The notes: generated by a model from the letters alone, not told the origin. Positions 23,601 to 28,059 are shown, numbered from the stretch's first letter. The stretch: DNA of 64,000 bases from Gracilinanus agilis (GCF_016433145.1 NC_058132.1:163346438-163410437), one strand, 5' to 3'. A program made the numbers and translations.

Positions 23601-24060
23601 GAGCCAGCCACCCCGGCGCAAGCGCAGACAGCCCACGCTCACAGAAGCCGTTAACCGTTGTATGGGTTTTAAACCGGATATGGGATCTTCTCTAACTTCC
23701 TCCTTATTCTCCGCCCATTCACCAAGTCCATTGGTCCCATAGCCGAGTCATCTTCGAATCTTCCCTCCTATTGGTTTAACTGTTCTATCCTCCCGCCTTG
23801 TAACTTCGCAAAGATCTTTGGGAGCCCCGTTTCTGGAAGCATGTGATCTCTTACTGCACGGCCCCATCCCTACCTAGGCGTGCTGCTGGTGAGCTCGGAG
23901 GGGTTCCTAAGGATTGGTGGGGTGGAAGGGGCTAGGTCGATCGGGGTGCCTAGAGACCTACACTGGCCGCAGACCCAGGTTTTCCTTAACCTTAAGAATT
24001 GGTTCCCCATCATTCCTCCGGCCCAGTGGTGAGGCTAGGCCCGAGCAGCCCTGGGGAGGT
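23380..24060. promoter_or_regulatory. CpG island, candidate bidirectional promoter (HYLS1 on -, RPS4 retrogene on +)
   Basis: CpG-rich; NRF1-like GCGCAAGCGCA near 23616; MYB-type CCGTTR at 23590, 23648 and 23655; GC box near 23711; inverted CCAAT boxes near 23729 and 23770. Confidence 0.7.
23800..23888 (+). other. Candidate non-coding first exon of the RPS4 retrogene (start approximate)
   Basis: Donor CTG|GTGAGC at 23889; matching acceptor cctttccttAG at 26880; start-stop ATGTGA at 23841. Confidence 0.4.
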
Positions 24061-24974
24061 GCATGCTGGAGAGATGGATTAATCCTATCCTTGATTTTAC
24101 AGGTAAAAACGCTGAGGCTTAAGTAAAGTGATTTAGCTAAATACAGTTTATAAATAGACGGAGCTTCTGACTACAGTACATTTCCCACTTTTGTCTCGGG
24201 TAAGTTCAAGTAGTCATTAACAATTTTTTTATCCTCCCTTCCTCCCACCCCATTTATGGTGTATTATTTTTTGCTTGTGAACTCATTTTCCAACCCTGAG
24301 CTTTAGTTTCCACGTTTTTAAGCAAGCAAGTATTTATTATGCACTTTTTATGTCAGGAACTATATAACAGGTTCTGGGGTTACAGAGATGAGGAAACACT
24401 TAGGTCTCAAAGACCTTAATCATAAATCAACCTGCGAGACAATGTTTTACATATATTGGCTGCCCCAGAAGTGCAGTTTTGACGCTTGGATAGGTACAGA
24501 GCAAATACAAAATTTAAGGCAGTTAGTGGGAAAAAATAAGGAAAAGCTTCTGTAAAAAGGTGGTGGCATCTTGAATCTTGGAAGAAAGTAGAGATTCTGT
24601 GAAGGGGAGGTAAAAGGGGCAAGTATGTTACTGGTATATCGGGCTGGCATTGCAAATGCAGAGAAAGGGATGAAGAAGTAACATGTGAGGAAGAGACCAA
24701 TTTGGTTGGCTCTTGGAAGTGGGAAGTGGGTAGTGGGTGGAGGAGTTAAATATGATGAGGTTGAAGAAGTGGGTTTCGAAGGGTTTTGAAGGAGTTTTTA
24801 TTTGAGTAGAGACAAGGAGCCAGAGCCACTAGAATTTGAGTAGAGTAGGTTAGGTCTCATATCTACTTGAGGAGAATAACTTTGGCAGTCATAGGAATGA
24901 TTGACTTGGAATGAAGAAAGGAGAATAAAATAATAAAAACAATAATGATAATAAGCATTTATGTAGCACTTGTA

Positions 24975-25200
24975 AGGGGAGTTGGTGCAGTGGATATAGT
25001 GCAGTGCCTGCAATCAGGAAGACTGATTTTCTAGAGTTTAAATCTGGCCTCAGACAGTTACCTATGTGATCCAGGGTCTGTTTGCCTCGTTTTTCTTACC
25101 GGTAAAAATGAACTGGATACTGAAATGGCAAACCACTTCCAATATCTGCCAAGAAAATCCCAAAAGGGGTCATGAAGAGTCAGACACAACTGAAATGACT
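24975..25200 (+). mobile_element. MAR1-like SINE
   Basis: ggggtcatgaagagtcagacacaactgaaatgact RTE-type tail. Confidence 0.65.
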
Positions 25201-25249
25201 AAATAGTAAAGCACTTTAAAGTTTGCAAAACACTTTACATATGTTGTCT

Positions 25250-26380
25250 CCTTTGATTCTTTACCAGTTAGAGACTATTGCGGTGGTCCAAGTCAGAGGT
25301 GATGAAAGCTTGAATTACGGGGATTCCTGTGTGAGAAAAAGAGATAGGGACATGGAAGAAATGTTTTGGAGGTAGAAATAGACTTAGTGTTGATTAGACA
25401 TAAGAAATGAGGGAAAGTAAGGAGTCAGGACGAATCTTGGGAGCCTTGAAGAAGAGTTCTGTTTTTGCCATCTCCAGAGGCAGTTTGGTAGAGGGTTGGG
25501 GTATTTAGGTATAAAAATTTCTGGTTTTGATACATCTGAGATTTGTGAGATGCCTACTTTTAAAAAATCCTTACCTTCCTTTCTTAGAATTAATACTGTG
25601 TATTGGTTCCAAGACAGAAAAAAAGGTACGGGTTAGGTGATTCAGTTTTAAGTGATTCACCCAGGGTCACAGCTAGGAAGTCTGAGGTCTGATTTGAACT
25701 CAGGACCAAAACCCAATATTAAAATGTGCAAAGGACAGTGCTTATTTGGGACTAGAGACTAGAGGCCTAGAGACCAGGTCTAGTATATCTGAATCACCTG
25801 CATAGAGTTACAATTAAACACTTAGGAGCTGACAAGATCATTAAGAGGGGCACAAAGAGAGAAAGAGGGTTTACGAGTAGATAGTAGAATGGTAAGCAAC
25901 ATCAGATATAAATGAGAGGTCAAGAAGGATGAGAAATGAGAAAAGCTGATCAGATGTTTAAGTGAAAAGATTGCTACTTTTGGAGAGAGCACTTTAAATT
26001 GAATGAAGCTAGAAACTATTGTGGTCTTTTTCTGGAATGTAGATGAGATGGGAAGAAGTGAGGATGATTGTTTTGGGGGGAGGGTAGCTGGTAGGGTCTA
26101 GTGAAGCTTTTATAAGAATGAGAAGATTTGAGCATATTTGACAGCATCAGGGAAGGAAATCTGCAGATAGGATTAGAAGATAGATTGAATGGGGCAGTCT
26201 TTTGAAGAAGGGAGGAAATTCAGTCCAGGGAACAGGCAGTGGGTTTAGCCTTGTCAAGAAGGGATATTTCTTTATTCAAAAATGGGGGAAAGGAGTAGGG
26301 GATGATGCCAAGGGGTTTTGAAATGAAGGGAATGGGAGAACAGGGCCTCAATTTTCTCAGGGATACGGTTCTTGGCTAAG
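25250..26380 (-). mobile_element. Degraded L2, interrupted by a SINE (about 25560-25710)
   Basis: L2 minus-strand motifs. Confidence 0.55.
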
Positions 26381-26384
26381 AAGA

Positions 26385-26515
26385 TTAGGGATGGCCTCAG
26401 CCACTTCCAGCTGTGTGACCTTGGGCAAGTCACTTGACCCCCATTGCCCACCCTTACCAATCTTCTACCTATGAGATAATACACCGAAGTACAAGGCTTT
26501 AAAAAAAAAAAAAAG
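26385..26515 (+). mobile_element. 5'-truncated young SINE1
   Basis: atggcctcagccacttccagctgtgtgacc...A15 tail. Confidence 0.85.
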
Positions 26516-26659
26516 GTTAGGGAGAGTAGGCAATATGGACAAATTTAGGAGATTTAGAATGGCCTCTGTGGAATGTGAAAGAGAATCACTTAGGGAGGGA
26601 GTTGATTTACTTAAAATGAACAAGTTGGAAAGAGGAAATTAAAAAGAAATTATCAAGGA

Positions 26660-26800
26660 CAGTGAGGTAGCTCAGTGAATTGAGAGTCAGTCCTGGAGAT
26701 ACAAAATCCTGAATCAAATGCGACCTTACCCACTCCAATCTAGCTATACAACCCTGGGCAAGTCACTTATCCCCTATTGTCTAGGAAAAGGTTTTAAAAA
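26660..26800 (+). mobile_element. Degraded SINE1-type SINE just upstream of the RPS4 retrocopy
   Basis: gtgaggtagctcagtgaattgagag...ccctgggcaagtcactt. Confidence 0.7.
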
Positions 26801-26893
26801 GAAATACTTAGAACCTTTTTGTATACTTCATATGTTTGCAAAATTTGAGAATTTAAAAGGAACTGGATTCCTTTCCTTAGGTTCAGTATAATC

Positions 26894-27685
26894 ATGGCTC
26901 GTGGTCCCAAGAAGCATCTGAAGCGTGTAGCAGCTCCAAAGCACTGGATGCTGGATAAGTTAACAGGAGTTTTTGCTCCAAGACCATCTACAGGTCCCCA
27001 CAAGCTGAGAGAGTGTCTCCCACTTATCATCTTCTTGAGAAATAGACTCAAGTATGCCTTGACTGGAGATGAAGTAAAGAAGATCTGCATGCAGCGATTC
27101 ATCAAGATTGATGGCAAGGTCCGCACTGATATTACATACCCTGCTGGGTTTATGGATGTCATTAGCATTGAGAAGACAGGAGAGCATTTCCGTCTGGTGT
27201 ATGACACCAAGGGACGCTTTGCTGTTCATCGTATCACAGCTGAAGAGGCTAAGTATAAATTGTGCAAAGTGAGAAAAATCTTTGTGGGTACAAAAGGCAT
27301 TCCCCATCTGGTGACCCATGATGCCCGCACTATCCGATACCCAGATCCTCTCATCAAGGTGAATGATACTGTTCAGATTGATTTAGAAGCTGGCAAGATC
27401 ACTGATTTCATCAAGTTTGATACTGGTAATCTATGTATGGTGACTGGTGGAGCTAACTTGGGTCGAATTGGTGTCATCACAAACAGGGAGAAACATCCTG
27501 GGTCTTTTGATGTTGTTCATGTAAAAGATGCTAATGGCAATAGTTTTGCCACTAGGCTTTCAAACATTTTTGTTATTGGCAAAGGTAATAAGCCTTGGAT
27601 CTCCCTTCCACGAGGAAAGGGTATCCGCCTCACAATTGCTGAAGAAAGAGACAAGAGATTGGCAGCTAAACAGAGCAGTGGCTAA
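26894..27685 (+). CDS. RPS4X: 40S ribosomal protein S4 (eS4), intact intronless retrogene, 263 aa
   Basis: Full [13 protein letters not shown]...RLAAKQSSG with no introns or disablements; about 7 substitutions versus recalled human RPS4X; decayed A-rich tract at about 27759-27790; symbol refers to the presumed parent gene. Confidence 0.95.
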
Positions 27686-28040
27686 ATGATTGCAGATAAG
27701 GATTTGTAGGGTATCAATCAAGTTGAGATTAGAATATGATTTAAAATTTTATTACCCTACAAAAATATAAAATACATAAGCAAAACAAGAGGTAGCTTTA
27801 AACAACTCAGTCTGATGAAGTAAAATTGAACAATCCATAAATGCCTTTCTCATCTTTCCTTGGATTAGGGTATTATGGGTTGCCCATAATACCCTAATCC
27901 AAGTTCATTTATTATGAATGTTGTATAAACTGTTAAAGATACAGCTGTATTAGTCTTGCTAAATTGCTTTTCTTTTTTTATGTGAGAAGGCTCACTGGTT
28001 GGAGGATGGGGAGAGGACATCCCAAAATGGCTGATGTGAA

Positions 28041-28059
28041 AATAAAAGCTATCAATAAA
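28041..28059 (+). terminator. Tandem AATAAA signals downstream of the RPS4 retrogene
   Basis: AATAAA at 28041 and 28054. Confidence 0.45.

Follow-up and report, generated by a model that had tools for sequence, protein, structure and literature searches.

In the opossum, RPS4X is located on the X chromosome (PMC4446799, PMC3477149), and autosomal retrogenes of this X-linked parent that are intact, ancient (>88 My), under selection and broadly expressed have been described in opossum and wallaby (Hughes et al. 2015, PMC4446799). Two intact copies lie on opossum chromosome 4, one of them with a 124-nt 5′UTR, and dN/dS values of 0.005-0.013 are given for them (PMC4446799). The opossum copies Rps4a1 and Rps4a2 are expressed broadly (10.6 and 5.2 FPKM in testis vs 23.5 and 41 FPKM in ovary), expression of the RPS4 retrogene in wallaby is likewise broad, and the authors tied the retrogenes to the loss of RPS4Y and, in wallaby, to the loss of RPS4X function (PMC4446799). 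RPS4 retrogenes of rodents and cattle are testis-specific or testis-predominant (PMC4446799). With respect to how retrocopies come to be transcribed, recruitment of a bidirectional promoter is a known route (Carelli et al. 2016, PMC4772013).

Here we describe an RPS4 retrocopy in a 64,000-nt stretch of Gracilinanus agilis DNA (GCF_016433145.1 NC_058132.1:163346438-163410437), referred to throughout as the window. We consider it likely that this locus is the G. agilis ortholog of the marsupial-wide autosomal RPS4 (eS4) retrogene, spliced from an upstream CpG-island start. That such a gene exists, how old it is, that it is under selection and where it is expressed have been known since 2015 (PMC4446799); the initial annotation of the window had noted that autosomal marsupial RPS4 retrocopies may already be reported. 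What the present analysis contributes is the anatomy of expression, namely transcription from a CpG island that probably belongs to a neighbour, two non-coding exons gained upstream, an acceptor at the 5′ edge of the retrocopy and a downstream poly(A) site. The features concerned are listed below. (The fossil cDNA copies are processed copies of the spliced retrogene mRNA found in other marsupials.)

23529..23537, minus strand: candidate first-exon splice donor (CTG/GTGAGA), in a block nearly invariant in four marsupials
23541..23847, no strand assigned: conserved promoter core in the CpG island, from marsupial alignment and motif positions
23848..23888, plus strand: predicted exon 1, non-coding, 41 nt, from the 5′ ends and junctions of cDNA copies; ends at donor CTG/GTGAGC
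23889..24102, plus strand: predicted 5′UTR intron 1 (GT...AG), missing from all three fossil cDNA copies, boundaries conserved
24103..24199, plus strand: predicted exon 2, non-coding, 97 nt, in 3/3 fossil cDNA copies; ACAG/G acceptor and GG/GTAAGT donor
24200..26880, plus strand: predicted 5′UTR intron 2, not carried by the fossil cDNA copies; its 3′ end is the acceptor CCTTTCCTTAG
26881..28070, plus strand: predicted exon 3, ~1190 nt, with 13 nt of 5′UTR, the entire coding sequence and ~385 nt of 3′UTR
26894..27685, plus strand: eS4 (RPS4) coding sequence, 263 aa plus stop, intron-free, from ORF, Pfam and protein comparison
27761..27790, plus strand: A-rich stretch, ~75 nt past the stop, read in the sequence and conserved
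27859..27903, plus strand: perfect 21-bp hairpin in the 3′UTR (-35 kcal/mol, z -10.5)
28054..28059, plus strand: poly(A) signal in use, AATAAA, invariant in all aligned loci

The 792-nt ORF has no interruption, its start codon lies in a good Kozak context, and all five eS4 Pfam domains were present in the 263-aa product in a Pfam search; the undisrupted, intronless eS4 ORF of the initial annotation is thus confirmed. As in a processed copy, the coding sequence is free of introns and collinear with the full-length parent protein. The protein shares 99% identity with chicken/bird eS4 and 96% with the main eutherian RPS4X cluster. Residues A166 and K200, which are unlike those of both chicken and eutherian eS4, are common to every aligned copy of the retrogene family, and the peptides IDLEAGK and NREKHPG also differ from chicken and eutherian eS4. 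The product is an ordinary ribosomal protein of the small subunit, on which purifying selection is extreme.

Comparison of loci indicated that the flanks of the retrogene are collinear with those in Trichosurus, Sarcophilus (the devil, in which the initial annotation had proposed to look for the copy), Sminthopsis and GCF_003287225.1, all of which carry the copy at the syntenic site. The protein at this site has zero amino-acid changes in at least four other marsupial assemblies, and Trichosurus, Sarcophilus and Sminthopsis are among those that encode the identical protein. HYLS1 and the retrogene were also found on equal-sized contigs in wombat, sugar glider and bilby, and the same locus is occupied in American and Australian marsupials. 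When compared to four copies from Australian marsupial loci, the G. agilis coding sequence shows 47-53 synonymous and 0 non-synonymous differences (dN = 0, dS 0.32-0.37). The earlier description of an old, selected retrogene is supported by both its synteny and these counts, and the insertion probably dates to ~80 My ago, before American and Australian marsupials split.

A silent pseudogene could present an intact ORF by chance, or could be kept identical through gene conversion from the parent, as has been proposed for the opossum 'RPS4Y' (Katsura and Satta 2012). We reject chance survival of the ORF, since 0 non-synonymous against 47-53 synonymous differences across ~80 My are not explicable in this way. 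The sharing of A166 and K200 by the aligned copies of the retrogene family argues against conversion as well as against a pseudogene, as does the reported disruption of the parent gene in wallaby (PMC4446799). Young daughter copies in Dromiciops drift instead, having accumulated 5 non-synonymous differences and 1 synonymous difference. We regard a silent pseudogene, or an ORF kept identical by conversion, as exceedingly improbable and treat the locus as a gene under selection.

The structure of the transcript can be read from three processed copies that its spliced mRNA has left in other genomes: L002 in a wallaby assembly, and L014 and L015 in Dromiciops. Each is non-syntenic and has its own poly(A) tail and target-site duplication, and in each exon 1, exon 2 and exon 3 are joined exactly at the positions of the GT...AG introns of the syntenic loci. 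In the window, these junctions map to the donor at 23888/23889, the exon at 24103-24199 and the acceptor at 26880/26881. All three copies keep the junctions, which demonstrates a spliced mRNA with an upstream start in the lineages of wallaby and Dromiciops; the expression anatomy of the retrogene is in this way documented without RNA data, through retrocopies of its spliced mRNA. All four 5′UTR splice sites are intact in the window, and the same exons are probably used in G. agilis, in which the predicted 5′UTR would be 151 nt long with no upstream ATG.

The initial annotation had proposed that the retrogene was wired to the HYLS1 promoter through a single new 5′UTR intron. Its donor (CTG/GTGAGC, exon end at 23888, inside the CpG island) and its acceptor (AG at 26879-26880, 13 nt before the ATG) are both present, and the three fossil cDNA copies support the CpG-island start and splicing from 23888 to the acceptor at 26880/26881. 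The single intron does not stand, as there are two introns separated by a non-coding exon (24103-24199) that was overlooked in the first reading of the sequence.

Exon 1 is predicted to start at the C of the conserved GATCTCTT, and its GT donor is kept in four syntenic species, as are the acceptor and the strong GTAAGT donor of exon 2. Exon 2 contains no ATG and overlaps the core of a dispersed repeat, with repeat-like matches elsewhere in the window. Note that the 3′ end of this exon differs between lineages, the donor of the Dromiciops copies being ~27 nt further upstream than that of the wallaby copy, and in G. agilis it may vary too. Intron 2 ends in CCTTTCCTTAG followed by GTTCAG; its AG and pyrimidine tract are kept in five syntenic species, and homology between the non-syntenic cDNA copies and the locus begins at this GTTCAG/GTACAG and ends in poly(A) after the second AATAAA. 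An Rfam scan of the 5′UTR introns, covering them up to ~26380 and again from 26461, found no snoRNA or other RNA families. (Segment comparisons had this same coverage; 26400-26442, within intron 2, was excluded from later searches.)

A retrocopy of a TOP gene may bring a proximal initiator with it or gain one later, and a CCTTTCC tract is present at 26870. The main transcription might on this basis arise from the retrogene's own proximal promoter just upstream of 26870, with the upstream exons minor or used only in the germline. However, exons 1 and 2 are present in all three independent fossil cDNA copies, which come from two distant lineages, and the splice acceptor of exon 3 is kept in five species. 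Moreover, the region around 26.8 kb is free of CpG islands, and only about one third of the 400 nt preceding exon 3 can be aligned to other marsupials. A start at such a proximal promoter is therefore very doubtful, and we favor the upstream, CpG-island start.

At the 3′ end, the twin AATAAA signals listed in the initial annotation lie at 28041-28046 and 28054-28059. Only the second is kept in other marsupials, and it is after this second signal that the cDNA copies are polyadenylated, the poly(A) tail in all three beginning ~5-15 nt past it. The A-rich stretch at 27761-27790, likewise noted previously, is conserved across the aligned marsupials and may be the poly(A) tail, now decayed, with which the retrocopy first inserted; a second candidate tail is the A8 run at 28066-28073. 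In agreement with the earlier remark that no target-site duplication is obvious, we detected none flanking either candidate tail, with no direct repeat reaching significance (shuffle p 0.3-0.7), as is expected given that ~80 My have elapsed. Separately, the hairpin at 27859..27903 is the product of a species-specific insertion and is absent from the other aligned species.

The CpG island at 23301-23900 is the sole one in this part of the window, with none other from 1.4 kb to the window end. Its core (23541..23847) has ~80% identity to Trichosurus and Sarcophilus, vs ~68-70% in the introns, and contains, in order of position, GCGCAAGCGC (23616), an ETS-like ACTTCC (23695), a pair of inverted CCAAT boxes (ATTGG, 23730 and 23770) and, at 23840, an E-box-like motif that is CATGTG in the window rather than the CACGTG of the Australian species. 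HYLS1 of G. agilis is the gene on the minus strand of the same contig, and the geometry suggests that the minus-strand donor at 23529..23537, which lies ~310 nt from the plus-strand start, is the end of HYLS1 exon 1. The island is then probably the HYLS1 promoter, head-to-head with the retrogene. RefSeq HYLS1 is 380 aa long, with a coding sequence that begins in a mini-exon at 8670 (minus strand), 15 kb from the island. (For the 367-aa HYLS1 ORF, the exact protein was not found on record.)

The distance to this annotated coding start, together with the fact that the candidate first exon of HYLS1 is deduced from position, would fit an island that serves as promoter for the retrogene alone, perhaps paired with an antisense non-coding transcript, and not for HYLS1. 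We think this unlikely, given that no other island occurs from 1.4 kb to the window end, that this one contains a conserved minus-strand GT donor, and that further 5′ exons are indicated by the HYLS1 coding exon as well as by its upstream mini-exon. Measured from the HYLS1 coding exon, the island is 16 kb upstream, which matches the layout of human HYLS1. We accordingly prefer a promoter shared with HYLS1.

The two independent Dromiciops cDNA copies have as their 5′ ends an extra G followed by CTCTTGCC, which places the predicted start at a C with pyrimidines after it (in the window CTCTT, the orthologous sequence being CTCTTACT; in Trichosurus CTCTTTCC). In the window, the pyrimidine run after this start is only 4 nt. 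The initial annotation had supposed that the pyrimidine tract of the acceptor is a relic of the parental 5′TOP and that its removal by splicing would release the mRNA from TOP control. The tract may indeed be such a relic, but release from TOP control is not supported, as the cDNA 5′ ends place the start at the conserved, TOP-like CTCTT.

From these observations we suggest a sequence of events. Before American and Australian marsupials diverged, a processed RPS4 mRNA copy would have inserted ~3 kb away from a promoter in a CpG island, which probably marks the 5′ end of HYLS1 in head-to-head orientation. Transcription would begin on the plus side of the island, at ~23848, at a C followed by pyrimidines; the transcript would be spliced via the non-coding exons 23848-23888 and 24103-24199 to the acceptor 13 nt before the ATG; and the mRNA, with the whole eS4 ORF in its last exon, would be polyadenylated near 28070, past the conserved AATAAA.

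For specialists, this raises the questions of whether a ribosomal-protein retrogene has regained a TOP-like start at a new promoter, and whether the second copies in wallaby, and possibly in opossum, are daughters of the retrogene or independent ancient retrocopies. One possible answer, which we offer tentatively and with less than even confidence, is that the borrowed promoter supplied a new TOP/TCT-type start at 23848, conserved across marsupials, and returned the gene to the ribosomal-protein translational regulon. The pyrimidine tract of the new 3′ splice site would then derive from the parental TOP tract, and RPS4 retrocopies arising in the germline would stem mainly from the rewired gene, so that the 'second retrogenes' found in wallaby and Dromiciops would be lineage-specific daughters and not the ancient orthologs that the literature implies. 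The wallaby copy L002 does look like a later daughter copy.

In the rationale of the initial annotation, the retrogene is an out-of-X copy, specialised for testis, that makes up for meiotic sex-chromosome inactivation. Its parent is X-linked, as described above, PATE-like genes are among the neighbours of the retrogene, and the daughter retrocopies imply germline expression. Against this, CpG-island promoters with CCAAT boxes are usually broadly active. The published opossum and wallaby tables, which concern species other than G. agilis and, in opossum, two copies of which either may be this locus, show no testis bias; expression is broad, and the lowest-expressing tissues include testis (5-11 FPKM vs 24-41 FPKM in ovary for the opossum retrogenes). 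In addition, the authors of that study link the retrogenes to loss of RPS4Y, together with loss of RPS4X function in wallaby (PMC4446799). The share of exon 3 words found was 93-97% in four sequencing runs of unknown kind (X19-X22) and a constant 34% in eighteen runs from other organisms that were guessed to be RNA, and we give little weight to either figure. The testis rationale is not sustained by the published tables, and we judge specialisation of this kind to be highly unlikely, favoring a gene that is broadly expressed.

How, then, does the locus compare with known systems? Among retrogenes of X-linked ribosomal protein genes (RPL10L, RPL36AL, RPL39L and the RPS4 retrogenes of rodents and cattle), it is alike in being an out-of-X copy that has kept its ORF. 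RPL10L and RPL39L are testis-specific or testis-predominant. Broad expression is reported for the marsupial RPS4 copies, which sets them apart from the testis-type RPS4 retrogenes of rodents and cattle. With the retrogenes of Hughes et al. 2015, the locus shares an intronless, autosomal, 263-aa RPS4 common to opossum and Australian marsupials, and the opossum-wallaby dS of ~0.32 reported for RPS4(2), with dN/dS near zero, is the same as the value obtained here; it differs in that the promoter, the 5′UTR exons and the CpG island are not described in that work (PMC4446799). Both opossum copies were said there to have wallaby orthologs, which is not matched by the daughter-like L002. Like the retrocopies of Carelli et al. 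2016, this one has a new first exon in a neighbour's CpG island and untranslated exons spliced just before the ATG, whereas its body lies 3 kb from the island, beyond their 2-kb criterion, and the sharing of the promoter with HYLS1 is probable rather than observed. Finally, as at 5′TOP/TCT-initiator promoters of ribosomal protein genes, the predicted start is a C followed by pyrimidines, although the run in the window is short, at 4 nt, and the start is placed by the Dromiciops copies.

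The sole long ORF in the flagged range (26894–27685, plus strand) encodes 263 aa and has matches to each of the five eS4 Pfam families (RS4NT, S4, Ribosomal_S4e, KOW and 40S_S4_C). Its protein shares 99% identity with eS4 of chicken and other birds, and 96% with the sequence that represents the large eutherian RPS4X cluster. The intact 263-aa RPS4 ORF of the initial annotation was thus confirmed, and we also found its acceptor (CCTTTCCTTAG|G; AG at 26879–26880, 13 nt before the ATG), its donor (CTG|GTGAGC, exon end 23888), its twin AATAAA signals (28041 and 28054) and, as it had indicated, no detectable target-site duplication at the retrogene. 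The Gracilinanus agilis locus itself in GCA_016433145.1 (CM028237.1) is 100% identical to window positions 22894–31685. Residues A166 and K200 separate the marsupial retrogene family from eS4 of chicken and eutherians, where T166 and R200 are found. The retrogene 3′UTR holds a perfect 21-bp hairpin (27859–27903; −35 kcal/mol, z −10.5) whose source is an inverted-duplication insertion absent at other marsupial loci.

At least 10 marsupial assemblies contain an intronless 792-nt gene for exactly this 263-aa protein. Moreover, the flanks are collinear with the window in Trichosurus (L001), Sarcophilus (L003), Sminthopsis (L005) and GCF_003287225.1 (L017); the insertion is therefore older than the split between American and Australian marsupials. 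Comparison of the window ORF with its syntenic orthologs revealed 47–53 synonymous and 0 non-synonymous differences (dS 0.32–0.37, dN 0). The synteny, which includes the devil site where a check had been proposed, and the dN of 0 bear out the suggestion of an old, selected retrogene.

Three loci that are not syntenic with the window encode this eS4 protein or a near-identical one; L002 is in GCA_028372415.2, which we take to be tammar wallaby, and L014 and L015 are in Dromiciops gliroides. Because each terminates in poly(A) shortly past the conserved AATAAA and is surrounded by a perfect target-site duplication (ATACAGCACCC, AAATAAATAGCT, AAATGATTCATAGA), these loci are processed mRNA copies. 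Each contains two extra segments upstream of the ORF exon; their counterparts in the syntenic Trichosurus locus, at 2.5 and 2.2 kb upstream, are bounded by GT...AG.

Processed copies, and the mRNA segments found in them, with their positions in the window
L002:5829-7140, processed copy, presumed wallaby
L014:3863-5135, processed copy, Dromiciops
L015:3863-5135, processed copy, Dromiciops
Segment 1, plus strand, 3′ end ...GTGCTGCTG (...GTGCTGTTG in the two Dromiciops copies), the donor of the initial annotation at 23888
Segment 2, plus strand, 24103-24199
Segment 3, plus strand, start GTTCAG/GTACAG, at 26881

In the window all four splice sites are intact, and the aligned syntenic species conserve them; together with the segment junctions, this indicates a three-exon retrogene mRNA. 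The 5′UTR splicing originally proposed, from donor 23888 to acceptor 26881, is therefore backed by three fossil cDNAs, except that the single intron is actually two, flanking a small non-coding exon (24103–24199). On the evidence of these copies, the structural inference is essentially right. Exon 2 may be variable, since its 3′ end in the Dromiciops copies differs from that in the wallaby copy. The 5′UTR inferred for the window measures 151 nt and contains no upstream ATG. Note that exon 2 (24103–24199 in the window, L002:5899–5936) overlaps a dispersed repeat in the repeat's core, and its wallaby version has ~80% identity to many places in the window on both strands; the repeat is presumably MIR-like, and exon 2 would then be an exonised repeat.

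The independent insertions L014 and L015 both open with G followed by CTCTTGCCGCGCGG. All four syntenic genomes have GATCTCTT... at the homologous position, so the leading G of the Dromiciops copies is non-templated. Cap-proximal reverse transcription of full-length mRNA typically leaves an extra 5′ G, and the non-templated G would place the start at the C of window position 23848. The first nucleotides of the mRNA would then be CTCTT(A) in the window and CTCTTTCC in Trichosurus, both TOP-like, ranging from minimal to canonical. Such a start, derived from the Dromiciops cDNA ends, leaves unsupported the idea that splicing releases the mRNA from TOP control. The CCTTTCC tract of the acceptor may plausibly be a relic of the parental TOP.

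The 367-aa ORF at 6416–7519 (minus strand) is HYLS1, its top match being the RefSeq HYLS1 protein of G. agilis, and PUS3 exons run on the plus strand from 9634; the retrogene is therefore upstream of HYLS1 and divergent from it. A 14-nt coding mini-exon (ATGGCAGAAAAAAG|GT; 8657–8670, minus strand) opens the RefSeq HYLS1 of G. agilis (380 aa), ~1.1 kb upstream of the main coding exon and between that exon and the first PUS3 coding exon. Because the HYLS1 CDS starts in this mini-exon (8670, minus strand) and the main coding exon carries an acceptor, further 5′ exons are expected. The CpG island at 23301–23900, which contains the retrogene donor, is one of only two in the window (the other at 1.1–1.4 kb) and the only candidate promoter on the 5′ side of HYLS1. 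Its distance from the HYLS1 coding exon, 16 kb, matches what we take to be the human gene layout. These considerations make it likely that the island is the HYLS1 promoter. Positions 23541–23847 have ~80% identity to Australian species, compared to ~68–70% for introns, and contain a pair of inverted CCAAT boxes together with one ETS-like and one E-box-like site; ~310 nt from the plus-strand start lies a minus-strand donor that is nearly invariant (CTG|GTGAGA, 23529–23537). The bidirectional promoter of a neighbour is a described recruitment route for retrocopies (PMC4772013).

Across 1273 positions the two Dromiciops copies, both with A166 and K200, show 11 differences. Of these, 5 are non-synonymous and 1 is synonymous, so the copies resemble young neutral pseudogenes even though their ORFs are intact. 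A protein match in Trichosurus vulpecula (P0055), on the chromosome record of L001, is a 263-aa 'S4, Y-like' ORF that is 88% identical, retains K200 and lies antisense within a gene resembling EIF4G (MIF4G/MA3/W2 domains); we read it as a probable daughter copy, older and decaying.

The retrogene is a real, functional gene that was already known. Hughes et al. 2015 described two RPS4 retrogenes, both intact, on opossum chromosome 4; these have wallaby counterparts, arose >88 My ago, show dN/dS values of 0.013 and 0.005 and are broadly expressed. The authors also reported that wallaby RPS4X is disrupted (PMC4446799).

Expression in opossum (FPKM; PMC4446799)
Rps4a1 / Rps4a2: all tissues 3-41; testis 10.6 / 5.2; ovary 23.5 / 41
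Rps4x: all tissues 15-330; testis 20.7; ovary 330

Broad expression of the opossum retrogenes, with lower values in testis than in ovary, does not support the testis/MSCI rationale first offered. Expression in G. agilis is expected from conservation, from the published Monodelphis and wallaby data, and from the germline expression that daughter copies imply. For RPS4 retrogenes, PMC4446799 mentions no UTRs, CpG islands or bidirectional promoters, 'promoter' appearing only as a general remark. In our tree, L002 and the Trichosurus copy at the syntenic site cluster together (support 96/93), and on this placement the second wallaby copy looks like a daughter that arose in the diprotodont lineage, whereas Hughes et al. 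2015 imply that it is the ortholog of a second opossum retrogene. The dS they report for RPS4(2), 0.317, resembles that of the window gene (PMC4446799).
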